64,000 nt of DNA from Epithemia pelagica (Eukaryota > Protista > Bacillariophyta), in NCBI GenBank assembly GCA_946965045.2, contig OX337228.1, forward strand, positions 1,364,001 to 1,428,000. Reading direction: 5' to 3'. Shown here one piece after another: positions 1-18,995 of the stretch (position 1 is its first letter; each line of letters opens with the position of its first letter). The notes under the pieces were generated by a model. It did no database searches. It saw only the letters and a list, made by a program, of their open reading frames with translations, and was not told the DNA's origin. Both the position numbers and the translations under genes were made by a program.

Positions 1-784
1 GGGAAGCCACTGCCGCAGAAGCCGACTTTTTCTCGAGATATTCAATGGTAAAGGGACAGTCGGGTCGCTGTGCCTCATTCTTCGTTGTCGCAGCGTCGGA
101 TGCACCAAATTTTTGTTTCAAGAGGGGAGCCAACTGTTGCGATTTCCATTGCTCAAAATCTCCTTCCAAATCGTCGTCGTCATTTCCCAAGGCCAAGGGC
201 AACAGTCGTTCGCCTTTGCAAACGTCAGCCAAGGCCTGGTCAATAAATTTGCCCATGGCATTGTAATGCTCGTATTGTTTGTTTCCCAAACCAAAGACAC
301 AAAATTCCAATGCAAGTTTCGTTGGTGGTTCTTGTTTGGATTCTTCTGGTTCATTTTCTTTTTCCGTTTGTTGTTGTTGTTGTTCTTGCAATTGGGAAAT
401 GAGCTGAGACGCATTGTCCGTTGGTTCGCCTTCGCCATAGGTGGCGACGAGCCAAATGCTGGGCGATTGAATCTCTTGTGGCGACGGCAAATCTTCGACA
501 TCAATGACTTGACACTGTACCAGGTTCACCAATTCCCGTTGCAACTGTCGCGCAAAGGACTCTGCTGTCCCGGTTTGACTGGCATAGTAGACAAAGAGCT
601 GTGGTGCCGATGAGTCGCTCGGTTGGTCGTCATCCTTGTTGGGATCAGTCGAACGAACAGCCTTGTTGTGGTTCTTATTCGTGTTGCTCTGGAACAACAC
701 ATACGCCAAAGAAGACGCCAACAAGACGGTGGAAACACCCGTTCCTACCAACACCCACAACAACGACGAGTCTTCTCCAAGCAT
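1..784 (-). CDS. POR: NADPH-cytochrome P450 reductase (diflavin reductase), 5' part; runs off the left edge
   Basis: Open minus frame from ATG 784 to the edge, absent from the ORF track because no stop falls in the window. It reads MLGEDSSLLWVLVGTGVSTVLLASSLAYVLF (membrane anchor), then FMN-domain motifs LFVYYASQTGTAESFA, VATYGEGEPTDNA, FCVFGLGNKQYEHYNAMG and LGNDDDDLEGDFEQW. Confidence 0.9.
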   Translation of the reverse strand, partial: MLGEDSSLLWVLVGTGVSTVLLASSLAYVLFQSNTNKNHNKAVRSTDPNKDDDQPSDSSAPQLFVYYASQTGTAESFARQLQRELVNLVQCQVIDVEDLPSPQEIQSPSIWLVATYGEGEPTDNASQLISQLQEQQQQQTEKENEPEESKQEPPTKLALEFCVFGLGNKQYEHYNAMGKFIDQALADVCKGERLLPLALGNDDDDLEGDFEQWKSQQLAPLLKQKFGASDAATTKNEAQRPDCPFTIEYLEKKSASAAVAS

Positions 785-1572
785 TGTCGTTCTTGATTCA
801 AGATCTAAGGGTGATACTAGTAATGGACTCTTTGTCCTCGATACAGCCAGACTTTGCAGAGAGGATCATAGCGAAATAGAGATAGAACCACGCAAGACAA
901 AGAGCGAACGATGACCACGTCACGGAATGCATCGATCGCGCTTCTTCTCGATTGAGCGGCCTATATGCGACGGCTCATTCGCTTTTGTAGGACGCGGTCG
1001 CATCACAATGGGCATCTCATCTCCACAATAATGACATTCGACATTCGACGCTCTAACCGTAGTAAGGTTAGAAGATAGAGACAACCTCTCTCGAGCCTCT
1101 TTTTAGAGTCGTAGACCAGGATGTCATTCGTCTCCAGAACGAGCTCCCGCAGGGGTTGTACAGGGGTATGTATGATGGAACGTTGCGCGAACACGCAACT
1201 CGTACTAATTACCTACTCCTATCGCCTTGCCATTTTCATAGAGCTTTCCTATTGTCAGGATGCTATAGATGCAAGACAGACGGATGATTTTCTGATCATT
1301 GTGCCAGGGTTCCGAACCATATTGTTCAGACCATGCAAATTATAGTGTTGTCACAGAACTCGTATATTTCCCCTCATGATGTATCCTTCGAATCATATCA
1401 CGATAAGAAGCCTCCCTTTACCAACGTAGTCCATACCACTTCGTGCCTTAGAGTGGTGATCATGATGAGGGTATGTTGGTTCTGTCGCGTGTCTGGTTCA
1501 TCCTCCGTTGCCTCGTTCTCTCTCTCTGTCTCTCTTCGTCCATCATCGTGCCGTGCTTCTTGGATCCCCAAT

Positions 1573-1622
1573 GGGTAGGTATACCGAATGGGCATCCGGG
1601 TAGGTATACCGAATGGGCATCC
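1573..1622. repeat. Exact 25-bp tandem duplication (GGGTAGGTATACCGAATGGGCATCC x2)
   Basis: Read directly: 1573-1597 equals 1598-1622. Confidence 0.95.
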
Positions 1623-1972
1623 ATTTTGGAGTATTGCCTTCCCCTCCGATGCAAAAGCTTTGTGTCTGAAATGTCACTGGGTCTTGGGATCTAATGACCA
1701 CATCACAATCGCTCCTTTCCTCTCCACATTCCACGGTCGGTCATTGTCGTTGGTCATCGGACCTTGGGACTTGGGACAATGGCTTGTAGCACATCTTCAT
1801 TATCATTCCCGGTTAGGGCAATACAATAATAGATGACAAAAAACTTCGAATACGCCCAACAAGAATCAAATAGGTCCGAAATCCGGAGCCGCAATCCCGC
1901 AACAAATGCCACTGCTTCCAAAATCACTTGCCTCTCATTTGAGAACAAGAGACGACGAAGAAGAAAGGCACA

Positions 1973-2519
1973 ATGAAACTTGGTTGGCTTGTAGCGTTCA
2001 TTTGCTTGGTTGTAGCCTCCGCTGACGGGGTGGCAAAAGACTGTCCCGATGCCGAGCACACGTGTGGTCCTTGTTGGGGTAGGTGATATATGCGCACACA
2101 AAATAAGAATAGGGTGTCGTGGATGGTATAGACACAATTCATTCCGGAATGGTGGTGGTTGGGTCGTCGGTTGTGACGACTGGCCATGCCGCCAAACAAG
2201 ACGCGCGTCTTCTCTCCTCCTAACACAAAAGAATAACATAAGTAGCTCGAGCGATTTCGAAACATTGGTTCTCACAAAAAGTCTCTGGCTGTTTCTTGTT
2301 CGTTACCAGGTGAAGCGGACGAGTACGATCCGGATACTGGTACGTCTTTCTTCTTCGTAGATGGAACGAATCTCGTGCTACTGGACACACCATCTGACGT
2401 ATCTCTTGTTGTTGTTGTTGTGTTGTTGTTGTTGTGCAGGTCGCATCGAACCCAAGGGCCCAACACCAGCTCCCACTCACAAGGTGACATATGTCAACCC
2501 ATGGGGTAGTGTACCGTAA
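1973..2519 (+). CDS. Small secreted Cys-rich peptide gene A; exons 1973-2078, 2310-2339, 2440-2519
   Basis: Spliced product MKLGWLVAFICLVVASADGVAKDCPDAEHTCGPCWG-EADEYDPDTG-RIEPKGPTPAPTHKVTYVNPWGSVP*. It has a signal peptide, GTAGGT and GTACGT donors, CAG acceptors and two phase-1 introns. It resembles the N-terminus of the vWA gene at 5054-6950. Expression is unverified. Confidence 0.55.
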
Positions 2520-2767
2520 GCAACTTTTCACCGCACACAAGGACAGAATCGTTGGGGTGATGGGCACTCTGTTTTCTTCCTTCTCCTCCCCAAGAGAGAA
2601 GAGAGAGATGACGTGACTCATCAAGGAGGAGGAGTGTCCCATCTTTAAGTCTCCAGCCGAAACTGTCCACAATCCATATGTTCCATCATTTATCACTATC
2701 AAAATCAATATCGTAGAAGCATTTAAAAACCGTGTTCGAGCCTCCTGGTTCGGGCTGATCCGGATAC
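2327..2767 (+). repeat. Duplicated segment copy 1 (shared with copy 2 over 2335-2758), flanked by 11-bp direct repeat GATCCGGATAC
   Basis: Matches 3957-4377 apart from about 4 substitutions and one 3-bp indel. GATCCGGATAC occurs at 2327-2337 and 2757-2767. Confidence 0.92.
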
Positions 2768-3673
2768 CACGGATCCCTAACCACTACTCATCCAGTCTAT
2801 TGAAGAGGATGAGAACAAACATTCATTACACAAAGACACACACACACACATTCTCGAGAGTCATGGTGCGTGGTTTCGAGAATCTGCCATTGTGTGTACA
2901 GTCAGTGCAGCCGGGGATGGCCACCTGTGTATAGATACGTACGGGTGATCACCAAGATGAGTGTGGATTTTTTCGAGTTTCTCATGATAACTTTCACCGA
3001 CCTTGGAATCTATAGTATCCTAATGGTCGAACAACAATTAGGAGAATGGTATACATGGTTTGTTTTACTTGAGCATTCTCCTAGAGGTAGAGGAAAGGAG
3101 GGAACATTCTCCCTAGTCCAACCAGTGTCCTCTTTCTTACATGATTGCTCCTTGCACTGGTAGTCCACTATCGTTGTTGCTCAAACACAGGGACCAAATA
3201 GCAACCGACTCTGCAATCGCCCAAAGTGGCATCCTCGGTACTCCTGATAACTTCGACCGGCCATGGAATATCGTAAATGGTATTACAGTTTATAATGATA
3301 TTTATGTTTGTTTTACTTGAGCGACCCGCTTGCTGATTCCTCACGATCGGGCAGCGATTTCCCCAGTCATTTTACGACCTGATCGTATCACCAAAAGGAC
3401 ATTATTGCTCTATAGGCGTAAGTAATTGGACTGCTGTAGTCATTGGTGGAATGTCTATGTCTTACCAGTATCCCAGTCATCATAGTTCCCAATAGACCCC
3501 CAAGATACATATTATTTATGCCCTGAATCTGGGTGTTACGCAGAGAGATCTCGTTCCTTCGCCGCGCGAGAGGTTCGTCTTTTTGTTGTCAACGTTGAGC
3601 ACACAATTGGTCCTCTTGCCACATTCGATTTGATTTGTCTTTTTTCTCTTCATAACACACCTCTACCTCTAGA

Positions 3674-4141
3674 ATGATGAACATGAAGATCTTTGTAGCT
3701 ACTTTGTTGGCAGCCTTGATGCCCGTTGCCGTCTTGGGTGACGGTGTAAGTATCCGTACGTGATGGTTTCGGAAGGAGATGGGTGGGTAACAGGAAGCTT
3801 CTCTTCTGACTCGGTTCCTTTTGCTTGATTTCTTTTTGTTTTGCGTTGCTCTTGCGTATCTTGCCTCGTCTCGACACATTGTAACGATTGATCGGCAATC
3901 CTCAATGGCGGCGGCATTACAGATGAATGTATTCACGTAGTGTGTGGAGACAGTTGTACTGGTACGTCTTTCTTCTTCGTAGATGGAACGAATCTCGTCC
4001 TACTGGACACACCATCTGACGTATCTCTTGTTGTTGTTGTTGTGTTGTTGTTGTTGTGCAGGTCGCATCGAACCCAAGGGCCCAACACCAGCTCCCACTC
4101 ACAAGGTGACATATGTCAACCCATGGGGTAGTATACCGTAA
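3674..4141 (+). CDS. Small secreted Cys-rich peptide gene B; exons 3674-3743, 3923-3961, 4062-4141
   Basis: Spliced product MMNMKIFVATLLAALMPVAVLGD-DECIHVVCGDSCTG-RIEPKGPTPAPTHKVTYVNPWGSIP*. It has a signal peptide, and its 39-nt exon 2 with phase-1 introns matches the vWA gene. The first donor is ambiguous (GT at 3744 versus GTAAGT at 3746). Confidence 0.55.
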
Positions 4142-4377
4142 GCAACTTTTCACCGCACACAAGGACAGAATCGTTGGGGTGATGGGCACTCTGTTTTCTT
4201 CCTTCTCCTCCCCAAGAGAGAAGAGAGAGATGACGTGACTCACCAAGGAGGAGTGTCCCATCTTTAAGTCTCCAGCCGAAACTGTCCACAATCCATATGT
4301 TCCATCATTTATCATTATCAAAATCAATATCGTAGAAGCATTTAAAAACCGTGTTCGAGCCTCCTGGTTCGGGCTGA
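3957..4377 (+). repeat. Duplicated segment copy 2 (putative donor: intron 2, last exon and 3' flank of gene B)
   Basis: Near-identical to 2335-2758; no flanking direct repeat. Confidence 0.92.
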
Positions 4378-5053
4378 GGAATGAAGTTAAATTATGGTTT
4401 CCTGAAACTCGTAAGCTATTTGTGTATCGAGACTCTGGTGGACCACAAGGTATTGCACCAAGAGTATCTGTAAAGGGTATCCCACAACTGGTATACGATC
4501 AGCCTCCTTGTGTGGGGTCGGTCTTGAGAGAAATGAGGTTTTGTTTTCGTGGGAGCACTCATGAGACTGGCAGTAGTGGAGGAACTCTCGTAACGCCCTT
4601 GTAACGCCATTTGCTGGTGTCTAGGAACCCCCTGTCAATGCATACTTGGCTGCCACACAGAAATCAATGTGTTCAACTACATGTTCTCTCCATTCGACAT
4701 ACTTCGTCTTGTAGTAGTTACTGGTCGATTATTGGGTGAAGGCATTTGTGTTCGCCCTCTTGAAACATGAATGGGAGTCTCGGATGTTACGGTGATCTGA
4801 CCATAGTGAAAATTTCGTCACGGGACCAGCAGACAACGGCTAGGAGTAGGTAGTACTCCGAACGACCAACCCTCAGCTATGCTGGGCTCAATGACCTACC
4901 ATTACCTCAACAGTACGTGTCTTGTTCAGCAATAATGTTATGACAATGCAATAATACTAAAATATGTAAGTTATGTTGGGTATCTGTTGTGTGTGTTTTC
5001 GATAGTGGTTTTGGTTTGATGGTTCTCCACAGAGTTGCCACGACAACCGCAGT

Positions 5054-6950
5054 TTAATAGTGCATCGTTTCCACAAAAGTCGAAATGATAATGTTGTCAA
5101 TGAACATGAAAGAATTTCCTGGCGTGCTATCGGCGTGAATACGGAATAACATGTTCACGTTGTTATCGGGAACTTTGTACCACTTTTCCAAGTGACCTTC
5201 AATAGCGTGGTTAAAATGGACAGAAATATGGTAGGAATGCTCGACCCAGCTGTCGCCACCATCAACGGAATAGTCCAAATGAAAGTGCTCACCGTAGTCA
5301 AACCAGTTATAGACCGCGTAACTAAACGTGACTCGGGCAAAAGTACTGCCCATGACATCGACGGGAGGCGAGAGCATGTATTGGTCGTTGGCAGGATTAT
5401 TGTCTCCTTCCGTCAATGTGTCATCAACGAGAATGACACACCAGTTACTTGCGTCGTCATCGTGGGGACAGCTGTAGTTGAACTTGCCATTCCCAATCAA
5501 TTTCTTTCCGCCAGTACTGCCAACAAATTCCCAATTCGAAGTGCCGTCCTCAAATGTGTCAACGACCACTGGTGTCCACGAGCCTTCTTTATAGGAATCC
5601 CCAGAACCACAACGAGCCTTCTCGAGGAGGATTTCGACGGATTCTTCAGCTGCCAAGGCCCCATAGCCCTCCAAAACAACCGTATCGCCTGAAGCAATTT
5701 CTTCCATCAAGGTCATGTTCACGCTTCCCGTTTCAATAACCACGGGAAGAACGGCAATGTGCGCATCTTGAGCGTTGCGCGACTGTCCAACGGCATAAGC
5801 ATGATGCTTGGCATTGTCCTTGTTCCTTTCCTCGAAATCATCACCGATGGTAGAAGTTCCATCAGCGACAACAACGATGGCTCGATCATTTTCGGAATCC
5901 TTCAAGGTCTCGTAACAGGATCTAATGGCATCTCCTGTATTGGTGTATCCTCCCTTGAAAGGAATAGTGCTCAAGCTTCCAGTAGCAGCTGTGGCGTCAG
6001 TCAAGTTTGACACAATTTCCGATTCATCGGAGAAGACAACGATAGAAAAGTGTAGATCAGGTGTCGTTGCCTCGTCCAAAGCTGTTATGAATTTCTCGGC
6101 ATAGTGAAGCATACTGGCAAAGTTGTCACAGCACGTATCCTCTCCGTTATAGGACGGATCAGTGGAATATTTGGCACAACTGCATCCATAACAATCGTAT
6201 GTTTGGTCGGTTGAACAAATGGATCCTGACATGTCCAACGCCACACAAACGTCCAATTTTCGATCGCAGCTTTTTTCGGTGGGAGCACCGGTCGGAACGC
6301 TGGTAGGAGCACTGGTAGGGGCGCTGGTCGGCGAAGGTTCTGGAACGTGACCCCAGGGATTGATGTATTCCTTGGTGGGTGGTTGGGTAGGGGCATTTTT
6401 TTTATCGCAATCATCAATACATTTGCGGCCTAGTCGTAGTAAAAGTATGACAGATTTGGGGATAGATATCAGATTGAACGTGGAGCAGTCGAACGCAGTG
6501 AGTGAGGAGTTTCCAAGAACAGTGCTGAGAATGTCCAGTTTCGATTCAAACAAAGATAATGAACTTCATCTCAAGACAAGGACAACGAGAGGAACACACG
6601 TACCGGTGCAAGTACTACTACCGCACACCTCCCATGGACATGCTGTATTTGTGAGGTTTCAGAATGTTATCATTCGAGCGAAAAGCGTCCGATAGGATTA
6701 TCAACAAAACAGCAACAACCAGATCACCAACAACAGCAACAAGAAAGAAAACAAAAGTTAGAGAACACCAAAACAGTGGAAAACAGAAGTTAGAGAACAC
6801 CAAAACAATGCCCACCCCCATGCCCTCTCTCGTGCACCTCTCAGCCACTCGTCGCGCACCTTTGGATCCAACTCCATCTCCTCGAGCCAGTGGCATCCAA
6901 ACAGCCACTAGCGACCAACCAGCAACGGCAAACTTCATCTTCTTGATCAT
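5054..6950 (-). CDS. Secreted von Willebrand factor A domain protein with PTS mucin-like linker and C-terminal beta-sandwich; exons 6860-6950, 6604-6642, 5054-6429
   Basis: Signal peptide MIKKMKFAVAGWSLVAVWMPLARG, Cys-rich ACPWEVCGSSTCTGRKCIDDC and PTSAPTSAPT repeats. MIDAS residues are intact (LDMSGS, GGYTNTG, VVADG). The C-terminal domain reads DTFEDG...LSPPVD...DYSVDGGDSW. Both introns are GT-AG and preserve frame. Confidence 0.85.
6747..6807. repeat. 32-bp-period tandem duplication inside intron 1 of the vWA gene
   Basis: GAAAACA(A/G)AAGTTAGAGAACACCAAAACA at 6747 and 6779. Confidence 0.85.
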
Positions 6951-7921
6951 GTGCTTCTTCACACCAAACACCAGCAACAATGGAAGGATGACCCACAACG
7001 AACTGTGAACTGGAAATTATGGGATGGACAAAAGGCAGTCCAGTTTGGTGGTGCCAGTGAAGTTACCAGTGTGGTGAGCGAATGTAGTGTTCGTATTAGA
7101 CCCTTTAAATTCGTGTTCAGCAAAGACCCAATTGATATTCACTAGGCAATTGTATCAACTTCTCAAGTGACCCTGGAATACTGGTACAATGGTGTGTATT
7201 GCCTGAACGACTGCTTACAATTGGAAGTCGTTTATGGGCAATACACAAACTATCAGGATGGGGTCATGGAAAGAATGACCTAGAACATGATACTGCAAGA
7301 TCAAGATGACCTCTTACGAGATACGAGTACGAGTACGAGTACAAGATACAAGAAGCAAACCACAGAAAATACAAGATGGTTGCGAGTCTAATAGCTTGAC
7401 CTTTTAGACCAATCTCTCTAGAGAGCTAGAAAAATCTTATTATAGTCTGGGTATAGCGAGAAGCGGCTTCCTTGGGTCTACCTACAATAAGAGATTTTCT
7501 CTAGAGACTGGTGATCCGGATATTCTACTAGTAAAGTGCGGATAGAAATATAATTCGAATCTTGTAGTTTTAAGCAAAATCCCTTAGACAGTCTAAGCTC
7601 ATTGCCACTTGCCACACCCAGCCGACATCACCACAAGACCGACCAACGACCAAGCCATGACCCCCAGGTGACCGTGACCCTGAGACCTGAGACATCTCAA
7701 CGAAGATATCTAAATTAATATAGGACAATACGGGAATATCCAGAGAGGAGTACCAGTTCGTCGGACTCTACCTAGTTGGTAGAGTTCGTATTCGTAGTCT
7801 ACTCATAGTCTTCACGACCGTCCATCCTGGCGAAAGATACCGTCCTGTACGAGTATTTTGGAAGACCGACTCCTACCAGTACGAGTACAAGTACGAGTAC
7901 TCCTACACAACAAGGACTCCT

Positions 7922-8172
7922 CTAGTGCCTAGTCTACCGGTCTCTGTCCTCATATGAGGACATCATGTCCAAGATATTAAAGCCTGGCAACCTTTACCTA
8001 GATATTAAAGCCTGACAACTGGTACTATGACCAAACTAAACCTGAGGAAAACGATGGTGCCATCCATTTTTCTCTATGCTGCAAAGAATACCATGAACTG
8101 AGATGTGCCAAATAATGTGTCCTCATATGAGGATATGTCCTCATATGAGGACAATGGTAGACTAGACACTAG
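7922..8172 (+). mobile_element. MITE-like non-autonomous DNA transposon, copy 1
   Basis: Terminal inverted repeats CTAGTG(C)CTAGTCTAC...GTAGACTAGACACTAG, no coding capacity, subterminal TCCTCATATGAGGA palindromes. A second near-identical copy lies at 8260-8507. Confidence 0.8.
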
Positions 8173-8259
8173 ACGATCTATTTGCATGACTACTCCCTAC
8201 CAGTTTTTAATTTGACTCAAGTGGCATCTTTCAATGAGCAAACAAAAAGACTGCTTACA

Positions 8260-8507
8260 CTAGTGTCTAGTCTACCATTGTCCTCATATGAGGACATATC
8301 CTCATATGAGGACACATTTGGCACATCTCAGTTCATGGTATTCTTTGCAGCATAGAGAAAAATGGATGGCACCATCGTTTTCCTCAGGTTTAGTTTGGTC
8401 ATAGTACCAGTTGTCAGGCTTTAATATCTTGGTACCGGTTGCCAGGCTTTAATATCTTGGACATGATGTCCTCATATGAGGACAGAGACCTGTAGACTAG
8501 ACACTAG
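8260..8507 (-). mobile_element. MITE-like element, copy 2, inverted relative to copy 1
   Basis: Its reverse complement matches 7922-8172 except for a few substitutions and a 3-bp indel. TIRs are CTAGTGTCTAGTCTAC and GTAGACTAGACACTAG. Confidence 0.8.
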
Positions 8508-9484
8508 ACGTTCACTAAAAATAAAACAAGAGATTTGAGATTTAGACTCCAGAGTGTGTTCATGTTTTTGTCATAGGCTGCCGAAGGTAGGTTGTTGATA
8601 GCTTTTAGCTCGCTGTCTGTACACATCCTTTCCGAGTTGCATCGTCTCGTGTTACCATGAAGAGGATCCAGTTCTTGCTGGCAAACAGTTGGAATGGACA
8701 ATCGAGGAAAGACGCGTCAAGAAGATGAACACTCCAAACTGCCAGAATTTTTCCTTCGTTGTCGTACCTCCTCCTTTTGGTCGCTGCCATGGAACGCTGG
8801 TCGACATGCATGAGTACCATGAGAATGGGAAACAAACAACAACACGACCGGCCTGTACAACAAGAATCCAACAACCAACCAGTCTAGTTCGAAGGTTGCA
8901 ACTCCGTTGCCAAGATCGGACAAAGATCACAGGGAGAGAAGTTCTGTGTTGACAATGGAAAGACTGGCGTTTCACCTTGTCACGCAGAGTCTCTCACAGA
9001 ATCTCGAATCCTGGATCAATGAGCAATCCGAAGTACGACTTGAAGAAACCAGAGAACCAATGAAAGTGTCATCTGTCTGTTTGCGTTTTGGCAAGGGTAC
9101 AATTTCCAAATCTTTTTCTGCCATTGTCAGGGTTCTCGTTGACAGCACTGTCGGAGACAAGCCAGACTCGTGTCTCTGGTACAGTTCATCCTGGCTGTGT
9201 GCACGTTGTGTGGTTGTGGATATAGGGACTCGTAAATCTGGTCCGGAAAAGGAGACTACCAGCGCTGTAAGTTTGGTGCGGTGCTGACTTTCAGTCCAAC
9301 CAAATGGGACAAGAAACCTTTCAAACACACACGATATTCTTTTGGCATGACACGATAAAAAACCAACTGAATCACCCTTGGTTTGAAACCATGAAAGTGA
9401 CACCCTTGTCGGAAGTCGGAACTCGCCTTTGGATGCAGAGAATCTCGGGGCCTGTGTGCATTCGTTTGGAAAAACCACAATCAC
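8504..9484 (-). pseudogene. Decayed reading frame of unknown origin
   Basis: ORFs 8972-9484, 8717-8923 and 8504-8701 share one frame, giving 327 codons with only 3 internal stops. The frame ends inside the MITE TIR. Confidence 0.35.
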
Positions 9485-17450: not shown

Positions 17451-18995
17451 ATGTTACATGGTAACAAAACGATCCCCATGGACTTGAAACAACAGGCACC
17501 ACCCGACTTGGTTGACGATACGATAGCGGGGAAAATGGATCGAGACGCTAGGTCACCGTGTCCTGTGCTCAAAAGCGATGGAATTTCACTGAGAGGCAAG
17601 CATCTCCGGCGACGGGATGTTGTTCAAGAAATTATCCAAACGGCCAGGGCTCGACAACACGTGATACTTGGGTCTCCACCAGCGATGGGGAAGACTTCTC
17701 TGATTCAATTGCTCGAGCAGCAATTGAAAAGCGAAGGGGCTTCTGTCATTCGTATGCAGGGAATACATTTGGGGGTGCAGAACATGGTTGAGACGCTTCG
17801 AGAGGAGGGAATCCGTGCTGACATAAAAGCGCTGCAAAAGCTACGAAATACTTGGTTAGTGGTTGACGATGCCCAGAACGTTTACGCTTCGGAATACTTT
17901 CCGTTTTGGCAGTTCCTTGTGAAAACCATCGCTGGTGCCAACGTAGATGAGCAAGTCTTCGTCGTCATTGCAGCAACGTACAATCTATCCACACCAGATT
18001 CCCCGGTACAATTCAAGGACCTTGCCCATATCCATACCGATATTTCGAGTCATGAAGCGCGAGAACTGTTTTGCATGTTTGCAGAGACTTGGAACTACGA
18101 CGGTTGGGATCACTTCCTGGAGAATATTCTGTCTATAAGCGAGCTCACCCCCGGACGACATCACGTTGGTGTTATTATTGCCGCTGTACGATTACTCGAC
18201 GAAGCCAGAAAACACCCACGCTCCCAAGTTCTGGATGAAAAAGCAGCCCTCGCCATGCTTCGGTCGGAGCATTTCATTAATCGACTGGATAGGTGTTTCC
18301 AGCTTCCTTCTAATCTCCCAGTTGAAGGACGAGACCGTATCCTGGATGTTTTGCTTTCTGATGGCTCACTTGATGTTACAGACGATGCTCTGCTTACACC
18401 GTTTATCCGAGCGGGCATCCTGACAGCGTTTGGTGAGTTCTCCTGTATTGCTTCACGGTGGTATTACAATCGTCGATGCTTTCCCAATCGATCACAGACG
18501 AAACCGGCTAGTCTTGATGATCTCGTCATTAGCGCGGTAGGTTCCTTGTCGTCCTTGAGGATGAAAGGGGCTGCGCAGGACGGGTTCCCCAAAGAGGCTT
18601 CATTTCAGCATCTCTTCAACGAGGCGCTGTCGATTCATCTTCCTTTGAGAAACCACATTGTCCCTGAGTTAGGAACATTTGCAACAAGTCCAGCAGGGGG
18701 AACGATTTCAGGAGAACTCGATTTTTACATCAACGGAGAACTCAAGTGGTGTTTAGAATTGCTGCGAATGGGCGACAAGATTGGTGATCACATCGCGCGG
18801 TTCGACAAGTTTAATGGCAAGTATCGTGAAATTCCTTCAAACGATTTCCTCGTGATTGACTGTCGAGGAAGCAAAACAGGAAGAGGGACGAACCCGATGT
18901 CCTCGCGATGTACTCTCTACTTTGCTGACGATTTCAAGACATGTATTTGCAAAATGCGCACGAAACCTGAGATTCAGATTAGTCTTATGAATTAG
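17451..18995 (+). CDS. Crinkler/RHS-type P-loop NTPase fused to a restriction-endonuclease-fold (CR-NTPase + CR-REase) domain
   Basis: Walker A GSPPAMGKT, Walker B WLVVDDAQ, and C-terminal PKEASFQHLF...VPE...GELDFYINGELKWCLELLR.GD.I.DH..RF...GKY...DFLVIDCR, the pattern of oomycete/fungal CRN C-termini. Intronless; start is 17451 or 17478. Confidence 0.8.
   Translation: MLHGNKTIPMDLKQQAPPDLVDDTIAGKMDRDARSPCPVLKSDGISLRGKHLRRRDVVQEIIQTARARQHVILGSPPAMGKTSLIQLLEQQLKSEGASVIRMQGIHLGVQNMVETLREEGIRADIKALQKLRNTWLVVDDAQNVYASEYFPFWQFLVKTIAGANVDEQVFVVIAATYNLSTPDSPVQFKDLAHIHTDISSHEARELFCMFAETWNYDGWDHFLENILSISELTPGRHHVGVIIAAVRLLDEARKHPRSQVLDEKAALAMLRSEHFINRLDRCFQLPSNLPVEGRDRILDVLLSDGSLDVTDDALLTPFIRAGILTAFGEFSCIASRWYYNRRCFPNRSQTKPASLDDLVISAVGSLSSLRMKGAAQDGFPKEASFQHLFNEALSIHLPLRNHIVPELGTFATSPAGGTISGELDFYINGELKWCLELLRMGDKIGDHIARFDKFNGKYREIPSNDFLVIDCRGSKTGRGTNPMSSRCTLYFADDFKTCICKMRTKPEIQISLMN

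Follow-up and report, generated by a model that had tools for sequence, protein, structure and literature searches.

Short pieces of DNA can be copied to a nearby place on the same chromosome while the original stays where it was. The closest described cases are 824 human proximal duplications, which lie less than 5 kb apart and are up to 619 bp long (Pace et al., 2009; PMC2671141). They show microhomology of 2–9 nucleotides (nt), some carry target duplications of 4–21 nt, the proximal ones have no poly(A), and breakpoints combining both marks ("MH+TSD") are among the 39 that were examined (Pace et al., 2009; PMC2671141). Here we describe a locus of the diatom Epithemia pelagica at which a segment of one small gene (gene B) was probably copied into the end of its upstream neighbour (gene A), which thereby received a new last exon. 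The locus lies in a stretch of 64,000 nucleotides (contig 1:1364001-1428000), hereafter called the window, and positions without a contig number refer to it. It is a well-documented instance of the repair-mediated proximal duplication class. Donor and copy share a chromosome, and the 1,622 nt from the start of one to the start of the other are well below 5 kb. The 419 nt copied are within the size range of the class (50 to about 620 bp), the copied DNA is unique and the donor is retained. Microhomology (here 3 and 2 nt), a target duplication (here 11 nt) and the lack of poly(A) are likewise shared, and the empty site can be recovered by comparison. The human cases differ in being vertebrate and inside repeats, and the few of them that contain exons are without in-frame use or constraint, whereas the present case comes from a diatom, has its empty site in a paralog instead of an ortholog, and provides another gene with a terminal exon that is spliced in frame.

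Three further systems resemble the locus in part. Fork stalling and template switching and microhomology-mediated break-induced replication have reportedly been described mainly for large human copy-number variants (Lee, Carvalho & Lupski, 2007; Hastings et al., 2009). Two microhomology-guided jumps of this kind, 1.6 kb forward and back, reproduce the structure found here with no staggered cut needed, and from sequence alone they are indistinguishable from break repair by synthesis-dependent annealing. The filler DNA and gene fragments captured during double-strand-break repair in plants are said to be mostly pseudogene fragments that erode colinearity (Wicker, Buchmann & Keller, 2010). There as here, genic fragments, whether linked or unlinked, are copied into break sites with microhomology; unlike them, the present insert is part of an expressed, in-frame chimeric gene. 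Retrocopies and templated sequence insertions mediated by long interspersed nuclear elements also have target duplications of variable length and also make chimeric genes, but the insert studied here has kept an intron and has no A-tail, and its donor is 1.6 kb away in cis.

The insert and its empty sites

Comparison of the window with itself showed that positions 2335-2631 match 3957-4253 and that 2627-2758 match 4246-4377, each with 99% identity and in direct orientation. The insert (2338..2756, plus strand, 419 nt) comprises a 5′ splice site, an intron, a last exon and a 3′ untranslated region (UTR). It was copied from 3960..4375 on the plus strand (3957-4377 with the microhomologies), which holds the last 2 nt of exon 2, intron 2, exon 3 and most of the 3′ UTR of gene B. 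A base-by-base alignment of the two covers 416 positions with 99.04% identity; they differ by 4 mismatches (2377, 2511, 2621 and 2696) and one 3-nt AGG indel (2624-2626). The landing site is upstream of the donor, five codons before the gene A stop, with a start-to-start spacing of 1,622 nt.

The insert is flanked by two copies of the 11-nt sequence GATCCGGATAC. The last 3 nt of the left copy (2327..2337), TAC, are microhomology with donor positions 3957-3959, and the first 2 nt of the right copy (2757..2767), GA, are microhomology with 4376-4377. An exact match of 11 nt between the flanks is expected by chance at about 4^-11 = 2e-7. The junctions are without filler, and the insert ends read TGGTAC... 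and ...GGGCTGA, the latter directly abutting the duplication. No run of A or T stands at either insert end and no terminal inverted repeats (TIRs) involve these ends. A preliminary description of this DNA had reported the near-identical repeat with a duplication around the upstream copy only, the TAC and GA microhomologies, the content of the copied piece from splice donor to 3′ flank, and the absence of TIRs and poly(A); our alignments agree with it in all these respects. The donor copy is intact in its native gene and has no flanking duplication, and the order exon 2, intron 2, exon 3 of gene B recurs in a related gene on contig 18 and in a neighbouring gene with a vWA domain. Since the upstream copy alone is bracketed by the duplication and the downstream copy stands in its native context, gene B is the donor.

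A search of the 60.5-Mb assembly (23 contigs) found the full 419-nt piece in two copies only, both in the window; with this copy number and without TIRs it is not a high-copy element. The earlier expectation of only two copies holds for the full piece but not for its first 162 nt (the intron and the exon start): of these, the paralogous contig-18 gene has a third copy, and a 41-nt part of the insert is repeated again 800 nt further on. When the 25-aa imported exon was searched against the own genome, the two copies and two places in the contig-18 gene were found and nothing else, so that the YxNPWG tail does not appear to be a large family detectable at the sensitivity of this search. Self-comparison of the 64-kb window revealed no second proximal dispersed duplication, and the window thus gives no sign of a high local rate.

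Searches with the flanks of the insert identified a site without it. Contig 18:586903-587545 matches window 1700-2337 (98%) and contig 18:587535-587601 matches window 2757-2823 (100%). The two matches overlap by exactly 11 nt, leaving a single GATCCGGATAC at 587535-587545. The contig-18 site is uninterrupted and translates as EADEYDPDTTDP*, ending ...YDPDTTDP*, which is exactly the ending that the preliminary description had obtained by removing the insert from gene A. A paralog on contig 3 (78-79% identity), which encodes a 450-aa protein with a PT-rich linker, is likewise uninterrupted and reads on DPDITNPPTS..., EAEEYVLDPDITNPPTS... An empty site with a single target sequence, looked for since the first description, was therefore found on contig 18 and has an uninterrupted counterpart on contig 3, both being paralogs and not orthologs or alleles.

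That contig 18 might be an allelic haplotig was considered and rejected, since of its 2.88 Mb only about 3.4 kb resemble the window, spread over four patches of a paralogous segment (window 684-2337 = contig 18:585911-587545, 2757-2823 = 587535-587601, 2820-3454 = 588369-589000 and 3531-4121 = 594610-595199). The empty site in the contig-18 copy shows that the insertion took place after the locus had been duplicated to contig 18. Mismatches amount to 1.1-1.6% between the contig-1 and contig-18 segments versus 0.96% between insert and donor, and in the shared 162 nt insert and donor agree against contig 18 at three sites. This order of mismatches and the three shared sites fit an insertion later than the segmental copy.

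Between the second and third patches, contig 18 carries a 767-nt element (587602-588368) with 53-nt TIRs (96%), an internal array with a 7-nt period and an ATT target duplication. It is an ordinary insertion of a miniature inverted-repeat transposable element (MITE) and later than the segmental copy; the window is uninterrupted there (2820-2823).

The hybrid gene and its transcripts

Gene A is encoded on the plus strand. Exon 1 (1973..2078, translated MKLG...GPCW) codes for a signal-peptide-like N-terminus and the Cys motif MKLGWLVAFICLVVASADGVAKDCPDAEHTCGPCW, followed by a split Gly codon. Its end is set by the RNA joint 2077>2309 with GT..AG borders (cut +1) in run X4; the intron behind it (2079..2309, 231 nt, GT..AG) is supported by this joint in two X4 contigs. 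Exon 2 (2310..2339) reads G-EADEYDPDT-G according to its translation and an X4 contig, and its last two bases (TG, 2338-2339) are already derived from the insert. The parts that follow lie inside the insert: an intron of 100 nt (2340-2439), the last exon (2440-2519, RIEPKG...NPWGSVP*, with the stop at 2517-2519) and a 3′ UTR of 237 nt (2520-2756). The former end of gene A (2766..2780, plus strand), the codons T-T-D-P-stop, is now stranded 3′ of the imported stop and 3′ UTR.

Exon-wise translation of the hybrid gives the order signal peptide, Cys motif, EADEYDPDT, G and RIEPKGPTPAPTHKVTYVNPWGSVP*, and the claim that exon 2 joins the imported exon in frame agrees with our translations. The transferred intron is in phase 1 in gene A and in gene B, and both split codons of gene A are G|GT (Gly). 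Altogether, the insert supplied two exon bases, an intron complete with 5′ splice site and acceptor, 26 codons closed by a stop, and a 3′ UTR together with end-processing signals. Judging from their N-termini, the products of gene A and gene B are probably secreted. None of the three small exons has a Pfam match. About 350 nt upstream of the gene A start codon, window 1573-1622 holds a perfect 25-nt tandem duplication (GGGTAGGTATACCGAATGGGCATCC x2).

The read evidence consists of assembled Logan contigs, which are mosaics of paralogs. X1 is DNA of the organism, X4 is evidently RNA of the organism (GT..AG joints, adapter tails) and X6 is an environmental oligo-dT RNA run; the runs that share sequence with the window are marine. 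In X1, two unitigs (2308-2364 and 2729-2786) consist of exactly the 27 and 28 31-mers specific to the left and right filled junctions, and they cannot exist without these junctions. An X4 contig that lies on gene A as far as 2341 goes on into the imported exon, of which it reads the first letters, CGCATCGAACCCAAG, and thus carries the 2339/2440 junction of the hybrid. At gene B, X4 has this overhang three times, at 3963. Both splice junctions named in the preliminary description, 2078/2310 (joint 2077>2309) and 2339/2440, are therefore seen in X4 contigs. An RNA contig of X6 (2441-2824) spans the right junction by 68 nt. It has variants at 2494 and 2646 that occur in none of the copies in the assembly, so that a different natural strain, too, carries the insert and transcribes across it. 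These RNA contigs show that the hybrid is transcribed and spliced. Exon shuffling calls for a foreign exon that is spliced in frame in RNA, and one X4 contig contains it. The locus had been introduced as exon shuffling in progress; the shuffling is borne out by the hybrid exon joined in an RNA contig, and its being in progress, as a segregating polymorphism, is a conjecture.

The letters in X1 that deviate from the window were considered as alleles and rejected as such, since every one of them matches a letter of contig 18 or of copy B. In contigs of other runs the letters of copies A and B are mixed at 2511/4133, 2621/4243, 2624-2626 and 2696/4315; an X5 contig of gene B mRNA, for example, has copy-A letters at 4133 and at AGG. 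Two expressed copies merged into de Bruijn mosaics might explain this, as might variants in the population or gene conversion between the copies. A 20-nt word from the left flank had four matches in JGI metagenome contigs, all of them unrelated sequences that merely encode DEYDPDT and have no similarity to the window.

Mechanism and rival explanations

We consider it likely that the segment of gene B was duplicated locally, by repair-type templated synthesis, into the end of gene A, giving the new last exon. A DNA 3′ end at ...GATAC would pair via TAC with the donor and copy 419 nt, and the copied strand would then detach and pair again via GA with the far side of the lesion. An 11-nt overlap between the far side and the near one, left by a staggered break or by a replication template switch that came back to a point 11 nt behind the one it had left, would produce the flanking GATCCGGATAC duplication. 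The process might have been synthesis-dependent annealing at a staggered break or a double replicative template switch, from 2337 forward to 3960 and from 4377 back to 2327. Since both mechanisms give the same product, the 11-nt duplication is no proof of a staggered cut. The original proposal, repair of a staggered break by local templated insertion, is thus supported in its templated insertion, while the staggered cut is one of two possible sources of the duplication.

Several observations weigh against this account or limit what the data say about its outcome. The X1 junction unitigs have 30/27 and 28/30 letters per side, just under the 31-letter bridging rule. The hybrid splice rests on one de Bruijn contig with an overhang of 15 letters, and the joint 2077>2309 is not assignable to gene A alone, exons 1-2 being identical in the contig-18 paralog. 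With contigs that are mosaics of paralogs, alleles, zygosity and copy-specific expression are unreadable from them. Copies A and B have a single coding difference, V/I at 2511, and show no sign of selection. Finally, both ends of the copied piece are suspiciously near landmarks of the RNA: it starts 2 nt ahead of the splice donor and stops about 9 nt short of the end of the mRNA, which leaves some room for an RNA template.

Such a template would be an unspliced, 5′-truncated pre-mRNA of gene B, used in target-primed reverse transcription or in RNA-templated break repair. It would also yield the 11-nt target duplication, and duplications of variable length are typical of target-primed reverse transcription (general knowledge; PMC2671141, Table 1). 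In favour of it are the two ends just named, with the gene B mRNA contig reaching 4386, 9 nt beyond the copied piece, and an RNA depth that collapses past about 4388. Against it, the insert still has the intron, which the RNA contigs show spliced out in three runs. The insert also lacks an A-tail and does not extend as far as the mRNA does. Among proximal (<5 kb) duplications poly(A) was found in 0/39 cases, and the retroposed ones were distant (Pace et al., PMC2671141). A lariat intermediate is ruled out by the two exon-2 bases (TG). An RNA template is therefore unlikely in our view. The features of a processed retrocopy are absent altogether, the 100-nt intron being present and no 3′ A-tail standing beside the duplication, so that the earlier exclusion of a retrocopy stands for a processed one but not strictly for an unspliced RNA template. 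Rather improbable, too, is an origin in two events, a 2,051-nt tandem duplication of 2327-4377 (at GA) and a later 1,622-nt deletion of 2338-3959 (at TAC), in which the apparent target duplication would be the surviving start of copy 1. It yields the exact structure observed with the same two microhomologies, and tandem duplications are common here (the 678-nt units on contig 18 and the 25-nt repeat at 1573-1622). It needs two independent rearrangements, though, with endpoints that by chance left an in-frame, spliceable gene, and is less economical; no intermediate occurs in the assembly or in the run contigs examined, and mechanistically it merges with the one-step double template switch.

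Mobile elements can carry gene fragments as well, and capture by a Pack-MULE-like element (with a 9-11-nt target duplication), a Helitron or an introner-like element was weighed against templated duplication. The 11-nt duplication is within the Mutator range (general knowledge), and the genome has active DNA transposons, among them the MITE in the contig-18 copy. No TIRs are present, however, and of the two copies in existence one stands in its native context without a duplication. Helitrons have 5′-TC...CTRR-3′ ends, insert between A and T and make no target duplication; the insert, unlike these, begins TGGTAC..., ends ...GGGCTGA and is flanked by an 11-nt duplication. Introner-like elements occur in many near-identical copies, each forming just an intron, whereas the intron studied here is found at only two or three places and always with the following exon. 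Capture by a transposon is thus highly improbable, and the same very low probability applies to a collapsed or mis-joined repeat in the assembly. Copies that are 99% alike and close together can confuse assemblers. Every junction-specific 31-mer is nevertheless present in the X1 DNA contigs, as the two junction unitigs show, an independent X6 contig crosses the right junction and an X4 contig carries the hybrid exon junction. The two copies also differ at 5 places and hence are not one collapsed sequence. For practical purposes an assembly artefact is excluded.

The gene family at the locus

The donor, gene B, is encoded on the plus strand in three exons. Exon 1 (3674..3755) encodes the signal-peptide-like sequence MMNMKIFVATLLAALMPVAVLGDGVSI, and its RNA joint 3755>3923 was found in X4, X5 and X6. 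Exon 2 (3923..3961) reads H-ECIHVVCGDSCT-G according to its translation and an mRNA contig of X5; intron 2 (3962-4061) and exon 3 (4062-4141, including the stop) lie inside the copied segment. The X5 contig consists of the pieces 3672-3755 / 3923-3962 / 4063-4386 and extends to 4386, 9 nt beyond the end of the copied segment with its microhomology (4377). Gene B has two splice donors 10 nt apart, of which 3755 is the major one and in frame; use of the minor one at 3745 leads to a stop after five codons. Among the X1 DNA contigs, one departs from the window behind 3524 and passes into TCTGTCTGAAGTTCGAAGC..., which is found about 90 nt upstream of the contig-18 gene; this may reflect either a mosaic path of the contig or structural variation in front of gene B.

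Downstream of gene B, a vWA-domain gene is encoded on the minus strand (5054..6950; Pfam VWA, E 2.8e-10). Gene B in its entirety is homologous to the first three exons of this gene, and the two share the phase-1 TG|GTACGT donor and the pattern GR..PT..Y[VI]NPWG[SH][VI]P. The third exon of the vWA gene starts with GR.. and contains ..PTKEYINPWGHVP, homologous to ..PTHKVTYVNPWGSIP* of gene B; BLASTP of exon 3 against the N-terminal part of the vWA protein gave 50% identity over 20 aa (E 3e-5). Gene B is thus the N-terminal module of a local, probably secreted family, with a stop just past the NPWG motif, and its end is ancestral and not a random read-through. Elsewhere in the window, the nearest Crinkler-type gene (17451-18995) is 15 kb from the insert, and positions 7921-8508 hold an inverted pair of 252-nt repeats (97%) 88 nt apart, a foldback or MITE doublet.

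The contig-18 paralog of gene B (594737-596521) has kept the promoter, exons 1-2, intron 2 and the start of exon 3. After ...KVTYVN the similarity is lost and a Cys-rich domain of about 215 aa follows that is unique in the genome and ends ...GLKVTYP*; it consists of two perfectly identical 678-nt tandem units. An X4 RNA contig passes from the shared part (as a loose end behind 4121) into this domain, which is therefore transcribed. The domain has no Pfam match, and the ESM Atlas scores of 0.82 or less (Sushi-like leads) were not counted as evidence. The contig-18 gene looks like a derived fusion, a second and independent one that uses the same N-terminal module. If it is derived, contig 1 would be the source of the segmental copy and contig 18 its destination.

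A long paralog of gene A is located on contig 3 (about 1098577-1100109, minus strand) and has the same signal peptide, Cys motif and EAEEY..DPD motif. It continues via a PT-rich linker of about 100 aa into a globular, Cys-containing region of about 350 aa, for which Pfam gave only a sub-threshold PT repeat and the ESM Atlas no usable match. Set against this long form, gene A and its contig-18 twin are truncated derivatives that have kept only the head.

The contig-18 fusion and the truncated genes A and A′ are further signs of module reshuffling in the gene family at this locus. The insertion might accordingly be seen as one step in the serial reshuffling of a secretion module by short DNA duplications, and this might be a major and ongoing route to new secreted genes in this diatom, and no isolated accident; we put this forward tentatively and consider it rather doubtful. 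The module would consist of a signal peptide, a Cys micro-exon and a PT linker ending in Y[VI]NPWG. The vWA gene would then be the module with a vWA domain and gene B the module alone, while the contig-18 gene would be the module cut after ...YVN, fused to a unique Cys-rich domain and then tandemly doubled. Gene A would combine the head of a contig-3-type gene with the tail of the module.

Exon shuffling is usually inferred late, after the junctions have decayed. Here the donor, the recipient, the junctions, the duplication and two empty-site paralogs are all legible, and the RNA contigs show splice donor, intron, exon and 3′ end of the donor functioning where they have landed. The locus is thus a compact model of how a single step of break repair or template switching, without a transposon or a reverse transcriptase, can replace the coding end of a gene. 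It extends the class of repair-mediated duplications, described in vertebrates, to diatoms and to a productive outcome, and its value lies in being an unusually complete, young and expressed example of exon shuffling by a known route. If the family has indeed been rebuilt repeatedly in this way, this would help to explain the fast turnover of lineage-specific secreted proteins in diatoms.

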